Positions 34,634 through 64,000 of a stretch of 64,000 nucleotides of DNA are shown piece by piece (positions within the stretch are counted from its first letter, which is position 1; each line of letters begins with the position of its first letter). The position numbers were made by a program, and so were the translations under genes. Origin of the DNA: Trichosphaerium sp. ATCC 40318 (lineage: Eukaryota > Protista > Tubulinea); assembly GCA_038496445.1 (NCBI GenBank), contig JALMLS010000525.1, positions 188,264 to 252,263 of the forward strand, in the 5' to 3' direction. The notes beneath the pieces are model-generated. The model did no database searches. It was given only the letters and a program-made list of their open reading frames with translations, and was not told the DNA's origin.

Positions 34634-36231
34634 TCAAAAGTCGTCTGCCACTGAAAATCTATGGGCCTCCGTTGCTTGCGCCACGCGCATTGCCTGCTTC
34701 ATGAAAAACGATTGTTCAAAGCCCTAGTAAAAATGATTAGAAAATTGTGCGATACAAACAACAAGTAGACAAACGTACGTTGGACCTGTTGATGCCATCC
34801 CAATATTTACCAGGCGGGATGTTAAATCTGTTGGGAGGGAATGGCCTGGAACTCCTCTTGTCCTTTTTACTCTTCTTCTTTTTGTCCTTTTTGCGCTTCT
34901 TTTTGCCAGTGTCCTGTAACAGTGCTTGTTAGTAAATCTGCAACAGCGGTATTAACGCTACACGTACATCGACAAGGTCTGCCATCGGATCACCCCACCG
35001 CAACTCACGCTTTTGCCTTTCGGTCAAGCGATCGTCGTTCTTTGTTACACCAGCATAACCGTCCTTTCCGTCATCTGAAATTTCCGAAGCCTCCTCATCC
35101 GAGAGTGCGCCACCGCCCCAAGCAACCCTTGGTTCTTCTGCTTCTCTTTTTTTACGTTCCTCCTGCTTTCGCATAAAAGCGTCTATGTGATCGACCTTTC
35201 TACCGCTCTTCTTGTCACGAATGACAGTGCCTGCACCTCTACCCATCAACTTTGGGTCCTTGGCGTTTATTCTAGCGTCTTCCCGTTCTCTATGCTCCTT
35301 TACCTCTTGTGCAACGTCACTGGCAGTCCATAGACCTGCACGCGCGCCTGACGTCATTTGTTCTCCTTTGGCTATCTTCTGTTTCTTGCTAGAGCGCCTG
35401 TCATCATCACGCGGCTCTCTTTGTCTTTTTTGCCTATCAGAACCTGCCCTAGAGGACGATTCAATGCCACTGCGGCGGCGAGGCGAAAGGTCGTTGTCTC
35501 TACGCCCTCTACGCGGCGGTGACAGATCTGTGTCCCTAACAGAACGCCCTCTGCGCGGCGGTGATAAGTCTCTGCTACGTTGTGGCGCCCTCTCCATGCG
35601 TTTACGTGGTGGAGATAGATCGTTATCCGTTCGACGTTTACGTGGTGGAGATAGATCGGTGTCTCGTGAGCGATTACGTGGTGGAGATAGATCAGTATCT
35701 CGTGAGCGATTACGTGGTGGAGATAGATCGGTGTCTCGTGCGCGATTACGTGGTGGAGATTGATCACTGTCTGACAAGTTCCTTCGTCTAGGACGCCTTC
35801 GTGGAGATAGATCGCGTTCGGTGTTGCGCACTGGCGACATATCATCGCTACTAGAGTCTGCTTGGCGCCTACGCGGTGGAGACAGGTCAGCCTGTTTAGT
35901 GTTGTTAACTGTCACCCAGCTATTACCACTCTTTTTGCTACTTTGACGCAATAACTCGTCTTGCATTTCGTCGGGTATAACGAGTTGAGGCTGATTTTCT
36001 AGATGTAACGTGTTAGATCAATCAACCATCAAATATTAATTGCCTACCGTCTTCATCACTCTTGTAGCCGTAGCCTGGTTGCGTCACTTCGCCTGCATTC
36101 GCATCTATTAAACCAATACCTCTAGTTTCTTTTACTTTGCGTTTTTTGCTCTTTTTACGCCGTTTGTAGTCTCCTGGAGTACTCTTCGCCGGTTTTCCTT
36201 TGTAACGCGCTAAAAAATCCTCCTTGCTCAT
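34634..36231 (-). CDS. BUD13: RES complex splicing factor BUD13
   Basis: DLSPPR repeats, GARAGL, TVIRDKKSGRK, RWGDPM and PPNRFNIPPGKYWDGINRSN. Confidence 0.92.
35470..35885 (-). repeat. Coding tandem repeat in BUD13 (DLSPPR units; three near-identical 36-bp units at about 35640-35760)
   Basis: Repeated CGTGGTGGAGATAGATC on the + strand. Confidence 0.85.
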
Positions 36232-50462: not shown

Positions 50463-50841
50463 TGTACACTAATGTAAGTAATTAATAGTATTTTGTAATA
50501 TTTTTGATATTGTGTACCCTTCAAGGCAATCTTTTGATTATTAACAAATAACCACATTTTTACCATGTAATATCCTGTTTAAATAGCAATTGTTACATTT
50601 TTTCATAGTTCAAAATAGAAATCTTCATCTGATCATTCATCTGAGCTTTCATTGTCTGAATAATAGTTGTGCCTACTTGTCCTACATATGGGTGATGTTA
50701 GCGAATTAAGCTGTTGATATAAGTGGAATCTCATTATCAAATAAGAATGAATTCATGCATAATTGCACTGATATGTATAGTTGGCAAAATATTTAATAGT
50801 AGCCTCAAACCATCCATTCAGGTCTATGATGGATGAGCATT

Positions 50842-50891
50842 GAGATTTTGAACTGTTTCAAAAAAAAAAAAAAAAAGAGATTTTGAACTGT
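50842..50891 (+). mobile_element. Poly(A) micro-insertion flanked by a 15-bp direct repeat (retrotransposition scar)
   Basis: GAGATTTTGAACTGT (50842-50856) + TTC(A)17 + GAGATTTTGAACTGT (50877-50891). Confidence 0.6.
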
Positions 50892-50940
50892 ACTAAACTG
50901 TATGAAACCTGTATCTAATCTGTATGGATTCTGTACTGGA
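50877..50940 (+). repeat. Decayed remnant of the CCCGTAC subterminal array seen at 63681 onward
   Basis: GATTTTGAACTGTACTAAACTGTATGAAACCTGTAT aligns with GATTTTGACCCGTACTAAACCCGTACGGAACCCGTAC (63681), mostly through CG>TG changes. Confidence 0.6.
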
Positions 50941-50943
50941 TTT

Positions 50944-50961
50944 CAGTGGTGGAATCGGACA
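50944..50961 (+). repeat. Left terminal inverted repeat CAGTGGTGGAATCGGACA
   Basis: Exact reverse complement of 63359-63376; both are followed inward by TACGCG after a 1-3 nt spacer. Confidence 0.9.
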
Positions 50962-50969
50962 GTACGCGA

Positions 50970-51340
50970 ATGGCACGTTTTGGGCACGTTTTGGGCACGT
51001 TTTTTTTCCACGCAAATTGCACGTTTTGGGCACGTTTTGGGCACGTTTTTTTTCCACGCAAAAGGCACGTTTCTCTTCCACATGCTGGCCACGCAAATGG
51101 CACGTTTTGGGCACGTTTTGGGCACGCGGATTTTCCACGTTTTGGACACGTTTTGGGCATGCATATTTTCCACGTTTTGGGCACGTTTTGGACACGTTTA
51201 TTTCACACGTTTTGAACACGTTTTGGGCATGCATATTTCACACGTTTTGAGCACGTTTTGAGCACGCATATTTTCCACGCAAATGGCACGTTTTGGGCAC
51301 GCGTATTTTTCACGCAAATGGCACGTTTTGAGCACGCATA
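50970..51340 (+). repeat. Left subterminal array, 11-bp unit GCACGTTTTGG interspersed with CCACGCAAATG
   Basis: More than 20 copies of (G/A/C)CACGTTTT, visible directly. Confidence 0.9.
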
Positions 51341-51413
51341 ATACAGCAGTTGTTAACAAATTTTATAATATTTATTTAATTATATAAACCAACAATCGTT
51401 ACAAATAAATACA

Positions 51414-53869
51414 TTACTGCTCACTATCATCATCTTCATCTTGACTATCATCATCACTTTCAACAATATCCTCCAAAGAAAATGGCAGAGCAGCATCGTA
51501 TAATGTTAAAAAATGTTGTCTGGGTTTTAGTACAAATAAAACTAAGTATTTTTTAAATAAATCATAATGTCTTATTAACAACCTACCTCCTGGATGTTCA
51601 TCAGCAAATTTAATGTTTTTTGAGCTCCATAAAGAAGTGAATAGTTGTCCTAGTTTGTTTTGACGTGCTTTTTTTACAGTAGGATTTCGGCAAAAAATGT
51701 CAGGTGTTTTTATCTACAAAATAGTCAATTGAATATGATAAAAAGAACAAATAAGGCTTACCTTGGTGCAAAACTGTTTGACTGCTTCTAAAGTGGTTAA
51801 AGCAGCAGTACCTGGGTTGAAAATACTGCTGGATTTATATTGTATAGGTTCAAAAGAACTTTTCTTGCAATTGAAAGTTTGATTACAAACAAGTTTTGCA
51901 AATCTTGCAATAACATCTGCATCGTACTTGCAAGCTGTTTAAAATTAATGTCATTAAGTTTATTTGATAAAAACTATAACGTACTTGCAAAGTAGTAAAC
52001 TTTGGCAAAAGAAGGACGTATAAAAAACAATGTCCAAGTGCTAATGTTGAAATAAATATTTACGATCGGAATAAAAAAAAAAGTACCACAGTGGTAGAAA
52101 ATCATTATAAGTATCTACAGCAATTAGTTTGTCTTGTATTGGTACTGGCAATATATAATATTCTGCATAATCGTCATCTTCTGATTCTTTCTCTGAGTAA
52201 CACAATACTTTGCCCACTTTAGTTTTTTTCTTTGAAAAAAAATTATTAATAATTCCCAATATTGAAATGATTGATCGTACTCTGGTAAGCATTTTTGCTG
52301 TTCTAGTTTTAGAAAACAATCCAATATTAGGTTCTTTAGCATCCACTAAAACTCTAAATGCAGCATGAGTAATGAATGGTGGCTATGGTTTGTACTGAAG
52401 TATCATATCGGTAAATGCTTGTAAAGAAGGAGCAACAGATTCTCTTGTAAATAAAAAACAATAATCTGCAATTGTACTGTGCTTTAATAAGCAATACATG
52501 GGAGTATTCCATTGTAGTGTTGTGTAGTACTGTTCATCATCATCTATTGAAGTTCCATCTGATGGTCTGGGTTGTTCAACGATTGGTGATTTTTGTTTTG
52601 TTTTTTTTGGTTTCCTCTTTCGTAATAGACTTGATTCTTCTTTTTCTCCTTGTGCTTCATGTAATTTAAATGGAGTTATCAATTTTGGTGTAGTAGTTAA
52701 TTCAGATGAGTCAGACGATTCACTACAACAATCAATGAATAAAAAGGAAACAACCAAAAAAAAAAGAAAGCAAGCAATCGTACTCTAAACTGTCAACAGG
52801 TGTTGAGGTTTTTTGTTGTTTGGAGGTGTTTTTTTTAGCTTTTATAGCTGTGAGATATAGTTCCATACCTTCTTCATCAAGCTGTCTAATAAATATCAAT
52901 AAAACTTGAAATAAATGGAAAAAAAATTGTACTTGAACGATAGAGGTAAACTGGCCATCCCAATAAACATGCCCTTTTGTACAGGAACAAAAGGAATATG
53001 CTTGTTTTGCCATGCTTGTTTAGTAACTGCTTTTAAGTTGGCTATTAATCCATCAGTGCTTTGTTTGTAAAAACTATTGTCTGTATTTACGAATGCAATT
53101 AATTTTTTCTCTATATGAATGTATCAGTTCAAATTTGTTAAAAATGGCTTGCCTGCAAGTTCAAAAGCATGGTCCTCATTCTCAGTGATATAATTGAAAA
53201 ATTTTCTAGCAAATTGTCCCAATCGCCTGTTTACAGAATCTCTAATAAATTTTGACATTTTTGTTTTATGTATATCCTCCATTTCCGATCCAAATTGCAC
53301 TTTGAATTGTTTGGCAAGCTCCACATAAAAAGTGTCATCTTTAATGTGAGTATAAGGAAAGGCAAATAGCAATTTGGATCGTATCCAATCCTAATTATTT
53401 TTTAATTGTTAAGGGTTTTAAACAGATTTTTGGTTCAACGATCGTACCCATTTTCTCTTTTCAATGTCCTCAATTTGTTTGTGAGTTGTTATAAATTGTT
53501 TGAAGTTAGCTTCAATGGTCTTAACAGCTTTGGTTATTTCTAAAACACCTTTTTCAACATTTGAAAGTCTTTTATCCATCGCATCCTTCATAACATTTAT
53601 TGAATTCATCAATTCATCTAAAAACAATTAAATAAGGCAAAAACTAGGTAAACGATCGTACTGGTGGTTATGTTACCATAGGAATTTTCCAAAATCTCTT
53701 CAACTGATTCTGCTTCATTATTATTAACCAATCGCCTTCTTTTCTCAACTGTGCTATTTGTTCTGGATCGTTTTCTTTTGTTTGGTTGTTGTTTGCTTTT
53801 TTGAGGAGAAAATTGTTCCATATAACTATTTAGATCGTTTATAGCATTCATACCTTGAGAATTGTCCAT
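51414..53869 (-). CDS. Transposon accessory protein: NLS-like basic patch, coiled coil, possible catalytically dead Ulp1/C48-like C-terminal domain, acidic tail
   Basis: Multi-exon frame from MDNSQGMNA through KRKRSR and MDKRLSNVEKGVLEI to YYILPVP...TWTLFFIRPSFAKVYYFAT...FNPGTAALT...EDIVESDDDSQDEDDSEQ*. The domain call is by eye. Confidence 0.6.
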
Positions 53870-53947
53870 TGTATTGCTTTAATTAATTTAGAGATCGTAA
53901 TTGAATTAATTTTACCAATCGTAAGTCTTGGCTTTTCAAAATTACTT

Positions 53948-56900
53948 TTATTTATATACATTATCCATAGTAACTACTCCTACATACAATAAATCAGTCT
54001 GTACATGGAGATTTTAAAAACTTACCTTTATTGGCCATCATTTGATTGAAGTTATTGATTTCTTCATTGTGATTTGTACTTTGATCGGAATAAGAAGGAA
54101 CATAATAAGGAAGAGATTTACAACAACAACAATTAATGTTAGAAATACTGTAATCGTCTTCTATTTGATTAAAATGTAATCTTTCCTTACGAAATCTGGC
54201 AAAATCTTTACCATGCCATTTTGTTATGCCATGAAAATACCATTTTGTGATAACCCCTAAAGGTTTTTGACCTAAATTGTAAGTAAGTTGGAGTAGTATA
54301 TATGTACTTACTTGGTAAATGAGAAAATGCTTTGACATGGGCATCGTTATAATTAATTATTGGACATGGAGTTATAAAAAATGTACTTCCTTCATTTGAA
54401 TCGTTTCCCTTCCAGTTTTTTTGTAAGAAAAGAGACTGAGTCAGTATTGTTTTGGCATGAGTTAAAGTGTTAGGATCTTCTGGCATTTCAATAAAAGCCC
54501 AAGAGTCATGTACAAATCTGTAAGAAAATAAATTATTATTAAATGGAAAATAACATTTGTTGATCGTACTCATAAGAAACAAATCTATTCTTAAGCACAA
54601 CCTTTGCTCCAACAACTACACTTCCTTGGAAAGTTTTACATTCTTGAGAAATCAAATTCATTAATTGCAAGCTAATCACGATTAGTAATTTCAAAAATTG
54701 ATTTTTTTACCCATAATTATTGTAGATAATTAAATCTCCTTCATGTATTGACTGTTGATTAGTTTGTGGGTTAACTGCAAAAGCAGCACGGATAAGTAAG
54801 TGTTTGTTTGCTTGGGTTAAAGGATCATTTAAATCCAAATACAAGGCATGCTTCCAAACAAAGTTTCTTTTATAAGGATTGTCCCATCGTAATAAATTTT
54901 TCCTTAATAATTTCATTTTTTGTTGTACCACTGATGATATTTCTTCCTCTGGTTGCAATTGACGAAGAATGACACTGTAGAAGCCTTTATGCTGGTTGTT
55001 TTTAAATTGTACCCTTGCTCTATGTCTTATCGTTGAAGGCATGCCACCATGCAATGCCCAAGCAAAACTAATTCCATCTATTTGTACTGTTTTTTTTCTG
55101 GCTATTAAAAAAAATTGAACAATAAAAAAAATGTACATGCCATTACTTACCAATATCAGATAATTCAATCGTTTTAAAACAATCCACATGATTTACATCA
55201 TTTTTATCAGCAGGAAAACCAATTATTGTGATACCAGCAGTTGGATGTGCATGGCCTCCATCGGTGTGCCATCCCAAAGTGTTACTTTGTGTGTAATACT
55301 GTAAAAAAAATTACAAAAATATCAAAAATCGTAAAGAAATACCTTTATCTCTATGCTGTAATATTTAGAGTCATATTCTGTTTTAGTTTTACTGTGACCC
55401 CATAATAGAAAGTGTAGTTTATATAAACGGTGCAAAATAGTATTGTCAGTGGCAGATAAAGGGTTAGGAGGATGACAATGATTATTGCCATAAAGAATTG
55501 GATTATCAGTATCGTAAGGAGACAACCAAGGACCAGCTCCAAAAAAAGCTGCAGCATGTTTTGTCATGTAATTACATGTTAATAGATCAGTTGCTTTGCT
55601 TGCACGATACTAAATTCAAGTTAATACTTGTAAGAAAGAAATATGTACCATGTAATGTAATTTATCTTTATGTAATTCAATAAATTGTCTTAAATCGTTT
55701 ATTGTGTTTGCCATATACTGAGACTCATTCTTAATAACATATAGATTAGTTGTAACTCCATCTTTGTCCAGTTTATGATATTTAAGATGTATATCACATT
55801 CAGCTGTAGTCAGCTAAAGGTTTTGTAAGCACTTAAAACAAAAAAAAAAGTACCTTATCTGATTTAAATGTACGATTTCTTGAGTCATCAAAATGAATCG
55901 TAGGAATGTTGGATTTTGCTCTTTTTTTAATTTGTTTATGATAGCCATCCTTGAACACTTCTTCAGGATAGTCTGATCCTATATAAATGGTTTACAAATA
56001 AATGGTTGCAAAATGTCATTACTTACTTCCTGTTGTTATTGAATCGTAAGCCAACCGGATTTGTTTAACACTAGGAGCTTTATTTAAAGCTGATTTACTA
56101 GTGTGTTGATTTGTTACACTATCATATAAGGCTATATTACCAGCCACTTCATATAAGTGTTGTATAGAGCATTTTTCTCTACTACATAACTTGAACAAAA
56201 AATGTAAATATCGTAATAAGAATTCTGGATAATGTACCTCAACAATGACTTTTTGAGCAGCTTTTGATAACTGTTGTTGTGTAGGACGATGTATAGTTTT
56301 GATTTTATTCAATATGACATCTCTTTGTGGTTTTTGGACTTCTAATTTTATCTTAAAGTCTTCAGATGAATCTTTTTGTAAACCCATGCCATTGTTGTAT
56401 TTGTATAATGTGAGTACTGCATCGTATATGGCCTTTGTATATTCCTTTCTAAGTGTCTTATTTATATCTATTGTAGTTTTGTTTACTACAGCTATCTAAA
56501 TTCGAATTAGCCATTGACAAGTAAAAAATTAAACATATCAAACAAAACTCATTGTTGGACATTGAACAGCATGGCCAATCGCAATATAACCCACTGACAG
56601 CATATGAAGTGCAACATAATTGATAACAACATGTCTGATGGCAGCATAACAACCAGCACAATTGACATGGTCAACACGATTGTAACAAGCTGACACGATT
56701 GACATAGCCAACATGATTGACGATTGCAGCATAGCCAACACGATTGACATGGCCAACACGATTGACATAGCCGACACGAGCCGACACGAGCCGACACGAG
56801 CAGCATAGCCAACACGATTGACATAGCTGACACGATCGCAGCATAACCAACACGATTGACATAGCTGGCACGATCGCAGCATAGTCAACACAATTGACAT

Positions 56901-59749
56901 AGCTGACACGATCGCAGCATAACCAACACGATCAGCAACGATTGCAGCATAGCCAACACGATCAACATAGCCGACACGATCAACATAGTCAACATGATTG
57001 ACATGGCCAACACGATTGACATAGCTGACACGATCAGCATAGCCAACACGATTGACATAGCTGACACGATCGCAGCATAACCAACATGGTCAGCAACGAT
57101 TGCAGCATAGCCAACACGATCAACATAGCCGACACGATTGACATAGCTGACACGATCGCAGCATAACCAACACGATTGACATGGCCAACACGATTGACAT
57201 AGCCGACACGATCAGCATAGCCAACACGATTGACATAGCTGACACGATCGCAGCATAACCAACATGATTGACATAGCTGACACGATCACAGCATAGCCAA
57301 CATGATTGACGATTGCAGCATAGCCGACACGATTGACATAGCTGACACGATACAGCACAGCTGACATGATTGCAGCATAACTGCCATGATTAAAGCATAG
57401 CTGACACAGTACAGCACAATCGACACGATCACTGCAGCATAACCAATACGACTGCCACAGCATAGCCGATACAATACAGCACAGCCAACACGATACAGCA
57501 CAACCGACACGATCACTACAGCATAGCCTATACGATCACTGTGGCATAGCCAATATCAATTACAGCATAATCGATGCGATAACTGCAGCATAGCTGGTAC
57601 AATCACCGCAGCATAGCCGATACGATCACCACAGCATAGCTGATACGATCGCTGCAGCATAGCCGATACGATCACCACAGCATAGCTGACACAATCACTG
57701 CAGCATAGCCGATACGATCACCACAGCATAGCTGACACAATCACTGCAGCATAGCTGATACGATCACTGCAGCATAGCCGATACGATCACTGCAGCATAG
57801 CTGACACAATCACTGCAGCATAGCTGATATGATCACTGCAGCATAGCCGATACGATCACTGCAGCATAGCCGATACGATCACCACAGCATAGCTGACACA
57901 ATCACTGCAGCATAGCTGATACGATCACTGCAGCATAGCCGATACGATCACCACAGTATAGCCGATACGATCGCTGCAGCATAGCCGATACGATCACCAC
58001 AGCATAGCCGATACGATCACCACAGCATAGCCGATACGATCGCTGCAGCATAGCCGATACGATCACCACAGCATAGCTGATACGATCGCCGCAGCATAGC
58101 CGATACGATCACCACAGCATAGCTGCACAATCACTGCAGCATAGCCGATACGATCACCACAGCATAGCCAATACGATCACTGCAGCATAGCCGATACGAT
58201 CACTGCAGCATAACTGACACAATCGCTGCAGCATAGCCGATACGATCGCTGCAGCATAGCTGACACGATCGCCACAACATAGCCAATACAGCATAGCCAA
58301 TGCAGCATAGCTGGTACGATCACTAGTACTACGCAACATAGCTGACACAGCATAGCCAACAAGATCGCCAACGATGCGCAGCATAGCTGATACACAGCAT
58401 AGCCAACACGATCGCCAAACAATACATAGCATAGCCAATACACCATAGCCAACAAGATCGCGACGCAATCGCTAGCCGATACACAGCATAGCTGATACAG
58501 CAAAGCCGACACGATTGCCAACCGATACGCAGTATAGCTGATACACCAAAGCCGACACGATCGCTAACCTATACACAGCATAGCCGACACGATCGCTAAC
58601 CGATACACAGCATAGCCGATACAGCAAAGCCAACACGATCTAACCGATACGCAGCAAAGCCGACATGATCACCAGCCAATACGCAGCAGAGCCGACACGA
58701 TCGCTAACCGATACACAGCAGAGCCGAAACGATCGCTAAAACCGATACGCAGCATAGCAATACAGCAAAGCCGACACGATCGCTAGCCAATACGCAGCAG
58801 AGCTGAAACGATCACTAACCGATACGCAGCATAGCGATACAGCAAAGCCGACACGATCACCAGCTGACACGCAGCAAAGCCGACGCGATCGCTAACCGAT
58901 ACGCAGCATAGCCAATACAACAAAGCCGACGTGATCGCCAGCCGATACGCAGCAGAGCCGACGCGATCGCTAACCGATACGCAGCATAGCCAATACAGCA
59001 AAGCCGACGCGATCGCCAGCCGATACGCAGCAAAGCCGACACGATCGCTAACCGATACACAGCAAAGCCGACGCGATCGCTAACCGATACGCAGCATAGC
59101 CGATACAGCAAAGCCAACGTGATCGCCAGCCGATACGCAGCATAGCCGACGCGATCGCTAACCGATACGCAGCATAGCCGATACAGCAAAGCCGACGCGA
59201 TCGCCAGCCGATACGCAGCATAGCCGACACGATCGCTAACCGATACGCAGCCGACACGCAGCATAGCCGACGCGATCGCCAGCCGACACGCAGCATAGCC
59301 GACGCGATCGCTAACCGATACGCAGCATAGCCGACGCGATCGCCAGCCGACACGCAGCATAGCCAATACAGCAAAGCCGACGCGATCGCCAGCCGACACG
59401 CAGCATAGCTGACGCGATCGCTAACCAATACGCAGCATAGCCGTAACGATAGCCGATAGACGATGCAGTAGCCAATACGATACACCTAGCTGATACAACA
59501 CACCAATAGAGCCGATAGCCATCGTTTAGAGCATAATAGGTCAAAAATTCGTCAAAACATAAAACGAAGGCCTAAATAACAATAAATAGAGACATACCTC
59601 CTGTTTTAGCTTCAATTTGATCTCAAGTTCGTCTTTTGTTGTTTTTTGCCTTTTGGCTCTCTAAAGCCATATTTAATTACGAAACTACTTTAAATAGATA
59701 GAAAAGGTACAACAGAAGTATTGGGATCATTTATACTCCTCTTTGCCAT
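53948..59749 (-). CDS. Transposon-borne AlkB-like 2OG-Fe(II) dioxygenase with a possible C-terminal SRA/SAD-like domain
   Basis: Spliced core YYSIEIK/YYTQSNTLGWHTDGGHAHPTAGITIIG...VQIDGISFAWALHGGMPSTIRHRARV...GFYSVILRQ. HxD at 55268-55260, distal His at 55024-55022, terminal Arg at 54964-54962. 5' exons MAKRSINDPNTSV/RAKRQKTTKDELEIKLKLKQE lie at 59749-59598, beyond the satellite; that linkage is inferred. Exons from 56496 to 53948 join without stops. Confidence 0.7.
56600..59520. repeat. ~2.9-kb composite minisatellite (GCATAGCCGA/ACGATC core), probably intronic
   Basis: Three zones: about 56650-57340 (GCATAGCCAACACGATTGACATAGCTGACACGATC), about 57540-58260 (23-bp GCAGCATAGCCGATACGATCACT) and about 58540-59440 (32-bp ACGCAGCATAGCCGACGCGATCGCTAACCGAT plus variants). 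Confidence 0.92.
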
Positions 59750-59996
59750 CGTACAAGTGAGTTATTCGCAATTTAAGCAAAATTCAGAGAATTGTTGTTT
59801 TTTTACCTTTTTTAGAATTTCTTAGCTTAAATCGCACAGAAACAAAAAAAAACCACAAAACCAACATACCAGTAATAATATCTTTGTTTTAGAGACATCT
59901 TTTCATCATTACTTAATTACTTGAGATTTGGATTAAGGCATGATTTTATCAACAATTTTTTTTGGTCTCATCGTCATTTATTATTAGATTATTACC
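59750..59996. promoter_or_regulatory. Putative bidirectional promoter between the dioxygenase gene and the transposase
   Basis: A 247-bp AT-rich gap between divergent ATGs at 59749 (-) and 59997 (+); positional inference only. Confidence 0.45.
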
Positions 59997-62900
59997 ATGG
60001 CTTCTACCTATAAAAGATGTGTTTCTTGCAATATAGAAATTTCAGCTAGTAACTTTGCTAGACATCTTGCTTCTAAACAACATATTCAAAATATAACTTG
60101 GATTACACAAAAAGAGGTACCTACGATACCTTCTCCAAAACGATTCAAGTCAAACAACCATAAATCTGACTCAATTACTTCTCAACAATTTGCTTCATCT
60201 GCTGAAACTTTACAACCTGTTAATCATTCTTTCCAATTCTCACAATTATTACAACAAAATTTGACACAATTACAACATCAATCGTTACAACCATCTCAAC
60301 AACCTTCACAACAACCTTTGATTGAACTCCATTCTTCCATCACACCAGCCACATCAATTGATGTACTTAATGAAACAGTTCCAGTAGAACAACAATTGCA
60401 GTACATTAACGATCAACAGCTTACTCCTTTACAACAAGTAAAATATTTATTGGTTGCTTTACAACACGATAAAAAGCTATCACAAGTCCATATACAAACA
60501 ATGATACAATTTTTTAACCTTGCACGCTGTATTTTAAAAAAGGACAAACAACCAATACCTTTAAACATCAAAACTTTCCAACAACAGCTACCACAAGTAC
60601 TTTATCAAATAATTTAATTATTATACTTACATTATTGTAGTTTAATGTAAAGATAGCCACGAAATTATTGGATGTACAATACAAAGCATATAATCAATTC
60701 CATTCTATGTCTGTTCCCTATGTATCAGTTAAAGAATATATACGTTGGTACATGTATTCTTTGCCTACATTGGATTTAATCATTCCTAAAAAAGTACCTT
60801 TTAATGGATATTATTCTGGTATTGAAACTGGAGCGAAATATGCTGCCCTATTTGAAGATGTTACAGACAATGATGCAATATGCTTAGCAGGTTATTAATT
60901 ATTAATATTACCATGGTTATTAACTATTCATAGTGTACATAGCATGGGATGACTTTACCTTTGATAAAAAAGATTCTTTTGGACCAGTTTATATGTGTGT
61001 GTGGAACTTACGATTAACAAAAGCTGATGAAGATCCCATACAAGTTGTATTGACTATATTACCTAAAGGTACTTTGTGTGTACATAACTTTTATGCTAAG
61101 AAGATATTAGGAGTTATAATAGAAAGTGTTATTGCAGAATTGGTTGAAAATTTCAAAGAACTGTGGCATGGATTTGATTGTTTCGTAACTGCAAAGAATA
61201 AGGTTCTCACTTTCAATTAATCAAAAATCTTTAATATTTTATCAGCATTGCAAAGTGTATGTACGTTGGACAATGATGCTGGGAGATAGTGTTGGTTCCA
61301 ACAGGTTTATATGTAAGAACTTTGTAATTCATTATTTGTTTAATATATTATGTAGCAATGGCAGCTCCAACAAACAAAAGAGCATGCAGACTTTGTACAC
61401 AAAGACGTGGTCAATTTCATATTGACAATGTACATTTACGAAAACTAAGAAGAGCAGCTTCTATTGAAACAGTTGTTGGAAAAGTAAGTGTATTTACTTA
61501 TAAGTTGTTGATTTGATTTATTGTTAGTCAAATTACCCTGAACTTAGTGACAATTTAAAAAACAGCTATGGCATGAAAAGAAAAAGTCCTTTATTCGGCT
61601 TAATGCCATATAAATTTAATTTATTTTGGGATACTCCTTATTGTCCTTTCCACAACATGTTTTTGGGAATATTTAAAATATTACTATCTGCTACAGTTAC
61701 ATGGATGCAAATACAACCATGGACTCCTGAAGTTGGTGTAAAAACAAGTAGAACATGGATTCAAACACTAATCAGCAATAGAATTGACAAATACAAAGCT
61801 TCACCTGGTGTTGACATCGTAAAGTAAGTAAATAAACATGACATGCACATATTTAGTTTATATTAGAACCAAGCCCATTTGGAATAATGATGCAAAATTA
61901 CAGCTCAGTTCTTGGGATGGAGCTGACTGCCGATCATTTCTAAGAATGGCTTTATGGGTTTTTAAAGGTTTTTTACCCACTGAAAATGATTATGATTTAT
62001 CACAATTTGTTACCAAAACAGATACAAAAGGCCAATCGTACAAATACACTCCTAGTCAATGTGACATGATGCCAATGTGGTATTTTACATTGTTTATTTA
62101 CTTAATAACTATTATAGGATTTTGTTGGTGCATTTTATAGAAATAACTCAAAAAGACAAATTGTCAATTGACGAAACTGAAGCAATAACTGATTATTATG
62201 CCAAACTATTCAATACCATTGAAATTGTATTGCCTGGTACTGTTTGTATTAAATTTATAGCTGACTGTTACCAAGGGTTGAACAGAAACACAGTTAACTT
62301 TCACATTCCTTTTCATTATTCATTTATGGTAAAACGATTTGGAGTGTTTAAAAATTTCAGCACTTATGCTTGTGAACGGAGACAAAAAACAATCAAAGAT
62401 TGGAAACACAGTATTAAAAACAAACACAAGATACAGTACAAGCCAATAACTCTTTTAATCTAAATTATCTATTAGAGAATTAATGCAAAAAGAACTAACT
62501 TACATGCAACTCAAATTTACAAAGCAAAACTTAGTCACTATTTTTGAGACTCATGGATTTGAATATGAAAAACCTGTTAAATTATCTGATGCATGGCAAT
62601 TAGGTGAGTAAAAATGGTAGGTTATATATCTAAATATTTGATAGCAAATAGATACAATAATAGAACACTTACAAAGGAAGAAAAGTTTGTGTTTATTCGG
62701 GATACAAGATTTTATTTTGCTAAAGATGATACATTCCAAAACTACAATGGATTAAGTTCTTCTTTAAAAGCTGTGTCTATAAAAACCACTCAAAAGACAT
62801 GGTTTAAAGCAAAGCACCCAGCTAATAATACACAACATATTTTTGTTGCAACAGAAGCAATATTAAAACATGTTGACTTACAGCCGATATTTATTTTTGG

Positions 62901-63135
62901 CAGGTAAGCAAACATATGTTTAGTTTGTTAATTAATCTAAAATAGTGCACTTATTGTTGATGAATGTTTAACATACGATCCTGTTAGCACAATGTTACGG
63001 TTGAGAACAAGCAATGATTTTAAGACAGTGTGCATTAATGCAAACAACATTATTTATAATGCAGTGGTTATAGCAGATCCGATGGAACCAAACATTTATC
63101 TGGAAAATCACTATGAACATACAATACCAAATTAA
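59997..63135 (+). CDS. CMC-superfamily (EnSpm/CACTA/Plavaka-like) DDE transposase with an N-terminal C2H2 zinc finger
   Basis: CVSC...HLASKQH zinc finger. D1 in VYIAWDDF..GPVYMCVWNL, D2 in MMLGDS followed by CRLC, CPFHNMFLG, and NFHIPFHY..MVKRFG...NFSTYACER (catalytic E). About 10 GT-AG introns join without apparent stops. Confidence 0.8.
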
Positions 63136-63244
63136 CATCTATTTTACACTGTATACCCACACAATAAACATTCTGAGTACAAACACTGAATTTTATGTAG
63201 ATACAAGCTATTAATAACAGGGTACAAAAATCGTATTAGCAAAA

Positions 63245-63356
63245 TACGCAAATTGCACGTTTTGAGCACGTTTTGGGCACGTTTTTTTCCCACGCAAATG
63301 GCACGTTTTGGACACGTTTTTTTCCCACGCAAATGGCACGTTTTGAGCACGCGTAT
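63245..63356 (+). repeat. Right subterminal array, same GCACGTTTTG motif and same orientation as the left array
   Basis: CGCAAATTGCACGTTTTGAGCACGTTTTGGGCACGTTTTTTTCCCACGCAAATGGCACG..., nearly identical to 51011-51060. Confidence 0.9.
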
Positions 63357-63358
63357 TT

Positions 63359-63376
63359 TGTCCGATTCCACCACTG
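63359..63376 (-). repeat. Right terminal inverted repeat
   Basis: TGTCCGATTCCACCACTG is the reverse complement of 50944-50961. Confidence 0.9.
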
Positions 63377-63665: not shown

Positions 63666-64000
63666 CAGTACTGGAATCGGGATTTTGACCCGTACTAAAC
63701 CCGTACGGAACCCGTACTTTTGACCCGTACTTAACCCGTACGGAACCCGTACTTTTGACCCGTACTTAACCCGTACGGGTTCCGTATTGTTGACCCGTAC
63801 TCTACCCGTACGGGTTACGTACTTTTGACCCGTACTCAACCCGTACGGAACCCGTACTTTTGACCCGTACTCAACCCGTACGGAACCCGTACTTTTGACC
63901 CGTACTCAACCCGTATGGGTTCTGTACTTTTGATCCGGATTAAACCCGTACGTAACCTGTACTTTCGACCTGTACAAAACCCGTACGGAATCCGTACTTT
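63666..64000 (+). mobile_element. End of a second, related TIR element with a CCCGTAC subterminal array (runs off the window)
   Basis: CAGTACTGGAATCGG resembles the TIR start CAGTGGTGGAATCGG (13/15). It is immediately followed by a 35-bp unit containing three CCCGTAC motifs spaced 11/11/13 bp. Confidence 0.65.

Follow-up and report, generated by a model that had tools for sequence, protein, structure and literature searches.

Introduction

Plant CACTA/En-Spm transposons encode the transposase TnpD and a second protein, TnpA, which binds the subterminal repeats and causes methylation loss on the element. Transposons of fungi that carry TET/JBP genes were reportedly described by Iyer et al. in 2014. 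To our knowledge, transposons with their own DNA-demethylating dioxygenase have so far been described only in fungi, and always with an enzyme of the TET/JBP family. Likewise, no eukaryotic DNA transposon that carries an AlkB gene is known to us, and one literature search on this point found nothing relevant. Diverse fungal DNA transposons, EnSpm and Plavaka elements among them, carry TET/JBP genes (Kojima 2025, PMC12730594); an earlier note on the DNA studied here had stated this for KDZ and Plavaka transposons. Some of these fungal cargo genes (PE type) are so divergent that only structure-based comparison detects them (PMC12730594). DIRS retrotransposons with Dam-like N6-methyladenine (6mA) methyltransferases and retroelements with DNMT or TET domains have been described, and transposon-borne DNMT, TET, MBD and Dam genes are already known (bioRxiv 10.64898/2026.05.21.726589). 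Here, a stretch of 64,000 nucleotides from the marine amoeba Trichosphaerium sp. ATCC 40318 (contig JALMLS010000525.1, assembly GCA_038496445.1; hereafter the window) was analysed. It contains a 12.4-kb element (50944-63376) with a transposase gene and two further genes. We see about an even chance that this is a transposon of the EnSpm/CMCT kind whose accessory gene encodes a very divergent Fe(II)/2-oxoglutarate (2OG) dioxygenase, of a family not established, that, by analogy with the fungal elements, would counter silencing by methylation.

The Trichosphaerium element shares with the TET-carrying EnSpm, Plavaka and ESTA elements of fungi the 5'-CA..TG-3' termini and, inside the terminal inverted repeats (TIRs), an extra gene with an HxD...H...R pattern and a third gene of unknown function. 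The presumed role of the cargo, escape from methylation-based silencing, is the same, and PE-type cargo is likewise divergent beyond sequence search. The differences are the amoebozoan host, cargo exons without a TET_JBP or other profile match, no visible target-site duplication (TSD), subterminal repeats that face the same way at either end, a 2.8-kb ACGAT-containing satellite between the divergent genes and the enrichment of ACGAT throughout the element. As in plant CACTA/En-Spm transposons, the TIRs start with CA, short subterminal repeats are dense, a transposase is accompanied by one or more accessory proteins, and the element appears to bear on how it is itself methylated. Unlike in the plant elements, the terminus reads CAGTGG instead of CACTA, a 3-bp TSD is not seen, the genes are separate rather than products of one alternatively spliced transcript, and the exons have no Transposase_21 or TnpA profile match. 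Retrotransposons with DNA-modifying enzymes resemble what is proposed here, in that a mobile element supplies the enzyme by which a mark on its DNA is set or erased, but they belong to another element class, carry another enzyme class and have an enzyme that is recognisable by sequence. Provided that the cargo has the proposed fold, the amoebozoan host lineage, an enzyme beyond sequence recognition and the ACGAT signal with its satellite would be new.

An apparently intact transposon with EnSpm/CMCT-like anatomy

The element ends in a perfect inverted repeat (18/18 positions, CAGTGGTGGAATCGGACA), which is the sole such pair in the window. By our own arithmetic, ~0.03 inverted pairs of 18 bp would be expected by chance per 64 kb. 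The relaxed TIR pattern CAGTNNTGGAATCGG had three exact matches, compared with 0.88 expected even with two mismatches allowed. Only the outer ~18 bp are inverted (up to about 25 bp with mismatches), and the termini read 5'-CA..TG-3' (CAGTGG...CCACTG). Further inwards, subterminal CACGTTTTG cores are found on the left (16 cores, 50974-51322) and on the right (four cores, 63256-63337). All of them lie on the plus strand at both ends, i.e. they are direct and not inverted. The GC content is 31% in the genic parts, compared with 41% in host DNA, and a central block of 2.8 kb reaches 43-48% and has a strongly asymmetric strand composition. The TIR-bounded element of 12.4 kb that had been proposed in the earlier note is thus borne out by its perfect 18-bp ends and the CACGTTTTG repeats. 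Judged from its sequence, the element is a real, autonomous and apparently intact cut-and-paste DNA transposon. The 18-mer of the TIR was also found in metagenome contigs (18 exact matches), none of which had the three element proteins or subterminal-repeat arrays; these matches are taken as chance.

The transposase gene could be modelled without a stop from an ATG at 59997; its ten introns are of the GT-AG type and 38-44 nt long. In the spliced model, an N-terminal C2H2 finger is followed by the motif order D, D, C(2)C, H(3)H, E. The corresponding residues, assigned by motif inspection and without a profile match, are AWDDFTF (Asp289/290), MLGDSVG (Asp387), CRLC at 406, HIPFH at 670 and YACERRQK (Glu694). 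The order D..D..C(2)C..H(3)H..E and 5'-CA..TG-3' termini are hallmarks of CMCT elements (PMC12730594), and three of the four marks named for this group were found here. The fourth is a TSD of 2-5 bp (PMC12730594). At this copy, flanked by GGATTT and TACTTA, no TSD was visible; the 2- and 3-bp candidates mismatch (TT/TA and TTT/TAC) in the single copy looked at, which borders on a decayed repeat.

The lack of a visible TSD weighs against the placement, and so do the homology searches, which were run on single exons. Pfam searches with seven transposase exon open reading frames (ORFs) gave no match at E<=10, Transposase_21 and Plavaka-type families included. A word-index search of a large protein collection with exon 8 yielded no candidates, and PDB sequence searches, for which four exons of this and the dioxygenase-like gene were used in all, gave no match for the transposase, RAG1 included. 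An exact-product look-up of one transposase ORF returned no record. The element is therefore EnSpm/CMCT-like by its anatomy and motifs, not by demonstrated homology. The CMC/EnSpm type named in the earlier note stands as far as anatomy, termini and catalytic motif order are concerned, but no homologue of the transposase was found and no TSD is visible.

The divergent gene and its candidate dioxygenase core

The transposase gene and the dioxygenase-like gene are divergent, with start codons at 59997 on the plus strand and at 56387 on the minus strand, in agreement with the head-to-head arrangement described before. Six exons of the dioxygenase-like gene were assigned with confidence (56387-56027, 55978-55854, 55813-55649, 55609-55343, 55298-55151 and 55101-54711). 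For these 5' exons, which comprise 486 codons, the manual model was identical to the result of a dynamic-programming search. The 3' exons (54517-54312 and 54271-54026) are uncertain, since this part can be read with an intron of 193 nt or with additional small exons. An SRA/YDG domain considered for these 3' exons was unsupported, with no match in exon-level Pfam searches. All three genes of the element could be modelled without a stop, as had been claimed, but the 3' exons of this gene are ambiguous and the splicing is a predicted one.

The presumed core of the protein is split by a 49-nt intron. Exon 5 encodes Y307-Y308...W-H317-T-D319 and exon 6 encodes L-H373-G-G...R383...F-Y-S-V-I-L-R402, so that the motifs YYTQSNTLGWHTD, LHGG and FYSVILR, quoted in the earlier note, are found at their places. 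A Tyr precedes the first His by nine residues, His317 and His373 are 56 residues apart, and an Arg stands at His+10 (R-A-R-V-Q-F), an order and spacing as in a double-stranded beta-helix core. A hydrophobic/Tyr pattern precedes HxD, and the surrounding stretch of about 110 amino acids is predicted, with low confidence, to be rich in strands. In TET/JBP proteins such as NgTet1 and TET2, the 2OG-binding Arg is located ~10-15 residues past the distal His. The cargo protein has Arg383 ten residues after His373, as a candidate for this Arg.

The one positive signal, a weak one, came from the neighbours of exon 5 (49 amino acids) in the ESM atlas, a protein language-model resource. The named family sets listed among them were almost all 2OG-Fe(II) oxygenases, namely PF09859, PF13640 (family set with 64/100 hits), PF03171, PF13661, HalD and DUF6445. 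With scores of 0.79-0.83, these neighbours are at the level of a lead only. PF13532 (AlkB) and PF12851 (TET_JBP) were in none of the family sets listed.

Several observations speak against a dioxygenase. The atlas leads for exon 5 rest on the same motif that had been recognised in the earlier note. The first 52 amino acids of exon 6, which represent the second half of the presumed core, had no oxygenase neighbours in the atlas; only C2/beta-sandwich-like neighbours with low scores were obtained, and the whole exon 6 was uninformative. The loose pattern Y..Hx[DE]..H..R arises in 24-48% of shuffles of the same His-rich protein. The six cargo exons gave no match in Pfam at E<=10, and the cargo exons had none in PHROGs and NCBIfam and only noise in PDB sequence searches. 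A HMMER search with exon 6 against 1.84 billion representative proteins returned 0 hits, exon 5 had no tblastn match in phages, and no related loci were found in metagenomes or among the viral sequences of IMG/VR. The collection searched by HMMER includes the transcriptome peptides of the host (MMETSP), and the lack of a match to exon 6 also speaks, weakly, against strong expression in that sample. AlphaFold models of single exons had low confidence, with a predicted local distance difference test (pLDDT) score of 46 for exon 5 and 44 for exon 6; exon 6 alone was modelled as four beta strands at its start followed by a helix. PF12851 was likewise without a match on the cargo exons at E<=10 in Pfam, a weak test, given that fungal PE-type members are equally invisible to sequence search (PMC12730594).

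These findings bear directly on the main rival explanation, according to which the divergent gene encodes an orphan accessory protein that is no active oxygenase and the HxD...H...R pattern is a coincidence in a His-rich protein. Such a protein might, for instance, assist the transposase by binding DNA or in regulation, comparable to TnpA of maize. The frequency of the triad pattern among shuffles, the missing profile, PDB and large-scale homology matches, and the low-score C2/beta-sandwich-like neighbours of the exon 6 fragment are what this explanation would lead one to expect; moreover, the other two proteins of the element are orphans as well. It fits less well that the language-model neighbours of exon 5 concentrate in one clan, the 2OG oxygenases, and that a double-stranded beta-helix core agrees with the predicted strands and with the hydrophobic/Tyr pattern ahead of HxD. 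In addition, there is a precedent for dioxygenase cargo within the same transposon superfamily (PMC12730594). We consider an orphan protein of this kind a possibility to be taken seriously, though short of probable.

The assignment of the cargo as a 2OG-Fe(II) dioxygenase is a lead, suggested by the order of the motifs and by the families that the language model places near the HxD exon. On balance, we slightly favour a 2OG oxygenase of one kind or another. The dioxygenase claim of the earlier note thus gains from the exon 5 neighbours, but not from any profile, PDB or large-scale homology match, and its "complete HxD...H triad" exists (H317-T-D319 and H373) yet carries little weight in view of the shuffles.

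Family assignment of the putative oxygenase

The cargo had been taken for an AlkB-type rather than a TET/JBP enzyme. It would then be a PF13532-like member of the AlkB family that removes lesions or marks of the 1-methyladenine, 3-methylcytosine or 6mA type. Some features point in this direction. The distances from Tyr308 to His317 (9) and from His317 to His373 (56) equal those between Tyr122, His131 and His187 of E. coli AlkB, and Y-S-V-I-L-R-Q of the cargo resembles Y-N-L-T-F-R-Q of E. coli AlkB. With the AlkB family in general (E. coli AlkB, ALKBH1-8, FTO), the protein has in common the order Tyr...HxD...His, a similar spacing and a last strand that ends in Arg-Gln. However, PF13532 found no match on cargo exons 4-6 in Pfam even at E<=10, and no family set listed for the neighbours in the atlas carried it. 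A hidden Markov model (HMM) of enterobacterial AlkB, a narrow profile built from E. coli AlkB and 120 relatives that are all >=77% identical to the query, gave no hit to the spliced cargo protein at E<=1000. A comparison of the two by hhalign yielded a probability of 1% and paired LGWHTD with the AlkB lid motif LGWT, not with HxD. The AlkB signature R-x-N-x-T-x-R corresponds to F-Y-S-V-I-L-R in the cargo, where, relative to E. coli AlkB, the first Arg is replaced by Phe and Asn by Ser. The first 2OG-binding Arg of this family is missing from the cargo protein, and no nucleotide-recognition lid could be recognised. The Arg at His+10 would fit an ordinary P4H/TET-like arrangement at least as well as AlkB. 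Specific membership in the AlkB family, and with it an enzyme that removes such lesions or marks, is very improbable in the light of these data; this part of the earlier note was not supported. Candidate families of the cargo include divergent TET/JBP proteins and other nucleic-acid-modifying oxygenases.

CpG depletion and ACGAT enrichment

The three genes of the element are depleted in CpG, with observed/expected (o/e) ratios of 0.35-0.48, and TpG and CpA are raised to 1.2-1.4. The CpG o/e ratio is 0.90 in 50.9 kb of host DNA; the values of the satellite and the left subterminal repeats are listed in Table 1. A large part of the remaining CpGs is found in one pentamer. Of the 99 CpGs that survive in the 9.1-kb non-satellite body (51341-56640 and 59451-63250), 53 are part of ACGAT/ATCGT. 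A first-order Markov model predicts 6.5 +/- 2.6 sites in the body, with a maximum of 15 in 500 simulations, which corresponds to an 8-fold enrichment. No enrichment was observed in host DNA (80 sites observed, 80 expected). The body sites are located in exons as well as non-exons and on both strands, and the commonest extended form is TACGAT (27 of 53 sites). Since the density of ACGAT in the body is 3.7x that of the host, selective survival alone is insufficient as an explanation. The pentamer is also contained in the units of the satellite, which are 18-23 and up to 188 nt long, with 72 copies that are all on the plus strand. ACGAT is a candidate binding or protection motif.

Decay of the same kind was seen next to the element. 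A second, related element starts at 63666 (63666-64000) with CAGTACTGGAATCGG, followed by 35-nt tandem repeats of the CCCGTAC type that run past the end of the window. Its terminal motif family is common with that of the main element and its subterminal repeats are different. In the left flank of the main element (50840-50943), the subterminal repeats of this second element recur as a decayed copy, in which intact CCGTACGG has become CTGTATGA. Every CpG of this old copy is now TpG or CpA (CCCGTACGG to ACTGTATGA). Elements thus appear to have inserted into or near one another, and old copies to have undergone a methylation-type decay. The CpG decay of the flank is the signature that would be expected if transposons of this genome were CpG-methylated. 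In Acanthamoeba, another amoebozoan, repeats carry repressive 5-methylcytosine (5mC) (PMC12344493).

The CpG depletion and the ACGAT signal are consistent with an anti-methylation role in the element. One aspect counts against it, as a depletion this strong is unexpected for an element that efficiently erases 5mC. The data also concern a further alternative, in which the cargo is a 2OG oxygenase that acts on protein, RNA or a small molecule, for example a P4H-like hydroxylase captured from the host or a giant virus, and is either a passenger or serves a purpose other than DNA demethylation. The nearest atlas clusters are indeed of the PF13640/PF03171 type and many of them viral, and Pfam detected no DNA-binding or methyl-reader domain in the flanking cargo exons. 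About 1,600 giant-virus-derived genes have been reported in the Trichosphaerium genome (PMC10521059). On the other hand, the gene lies within the TIRs, is intact and is divergent to the transposase gene as in the fungal TET-carrying elements, and CpG decay together with ACGAT enrichment indicates a process at the DNA level. A substrate other than DNA is unlikely in our view.

Proposed mode of action

According to the preferred reading, a transposon with a DNA-directed dioxygenase, the transposase presumably recognises and cuts the CAGT..TGGAATCGG termini, and the two further genes of the element would be accessory. The divergent gene most likely encodes the very divergent Fe(II)/2OG dioxygenase, with His317, Asp319 and His373 as proposed metal ligands and 2OG bound by Arg383 or Arg402. 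By analogy with the fungal TET/JBP transposons, the enzyme would counter methylation-based silencing by oxidising a methylated base in the DNA of the element. In this way, the promoter region shared by the divergent gene pair would stay active. The candidate base that best fits the CpG decay is 5mC at CpG. One or both accessory proteins may bind short repeats, and the ACGAT sites, scattered in the element and packed in the satellite, would be candidate target, protected or recruitment positions. We infer the anti-silencing function from these considerations; it is consistent with the CpG depletion and with the fungal precedent (PMC12730594).

A more specific version of this proposal appears doubtful to us. 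It assumes an orphan Fe(II)/2OG family that travels with EnSpm-like transposons of Amoebozoa and removes a methyl mark from their DNA, where ACGAT serves as an address label that recruits the enzyme or an accessory protein and whose CpGs are kept unmethylated. If true, a transposon-borne DNA demethylase would for the first time be known from outside fungi, and it would come with a targeting code of its own. If the general proposal is correct, DNA transposons would have resorted more than once to "bring your own eraser" against silencing by methylation, and the cargo would represent a new branch of nucleic-acid-modifying 2OG oxygenases. Apart from the enzyme question, the element-wide enrichment of ACGAT amid CpG depletion is a concrete signal and may show how the element is marked or protected.

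Further features of the element and the host sequence

The features of the element are compiled in Table 1.

Table 1. Coordinates of the features of the Trichosphaerium element within the window
Feature	Position	Strand	Basis
Left TIR CAGTGGTGGAATCGGACA, 5'-CA terminus	50944..50961	+	18/18 inverted repeat
Left subterminal array, 16 CACGTTTTG cores, periods 11/35/46 nt, CpG o/e 1.5	50964..51340	+	
Accessory gene 3, 12 exons, about 635 amino acids	53869-51414	-	gene model, introns 42-61 nt
Dioxygenase-like gene, about 636-700 amino acids	53990..56387	-	gene model
Exon 6 start of the dioxygenase-like gene, ...LHGGMPSTIRHRARVQF...FYSVILRQ, His373, Arg383 (His+10), Arg402	54955..55101	-	motif inspection
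Exon 5 of the dioxygenase-like gene, YYTQSNTLGWHTDGG..., Tyr308, His317, Asp319 of the model	55151..55298	-	motif inspection and language-model neighbours
GC-rich, strand-asymmetric satellite, 2.8 kb, between the divergent genes, CpG o/e 1.36	56650..59450		
Transposase gene, 11 exons, 905 amino acids	59997..63135	+	spliced model
Right subterminal repeats, 4 CACGTTTTG cores, orientation same as left	63255..63345	+	
Right TIR, ..CCACTG-3'	63359..63376	-	

The protein encoded by accessory gene 3 has a basic N-terminus, a coiled coil and an acidic tail, and Pfam searches with six of its ORFs gave no significant family match. One GC-AG intron (GCAAGC...ATATAG, 42 nt; 53110-53153, minus strand) is apparently needed to hold the frame. 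Several other donors of this gene read GTACGAT and overlap with the enriched ACGAT pentamer.

A location of the satellite inside the dioxygenase-like gene was rejected, because the modelled ATG at 56387 lies downstream of the array. On the minus strand, a 23-nt unit of the satellite (CAGTGATCGTATCGG) fits 11 of the 13 specified positions of the TIR pattern CAGTNNTGGAATCGG at three places (57778-58205). This resemblance may be accidental, or it may mean that terminus-like sites make up the array. When the window was scanned with Rfam and for tRNAs, no matches were obtained.

The draft genome paper of Trichosphaerium mentions neither transposons nor DNA methylation (PMC10521059). A host ORF (34932-35966) encodes a sequence with 100% identity to a Trichosphaerium sp. 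ATCC 40318 (Amoebozoa, Discosea) peptide from MMETSP0405, which confirms that the host is a protist, as had been assumed; an exact-product look-up of the host peptide returned no record. The ORF is part of a BUD13-like gene (PF09736; 34637-36231, minus strand), the structure of which is fixed by the transcript-derived peptide. Its introns are about 40 nt long and have the same size as those in the genes of the element. The gene matches the MMETSP0405 peptide, with one DLSPPRNRSRDT repeat copy fewer in the genome.

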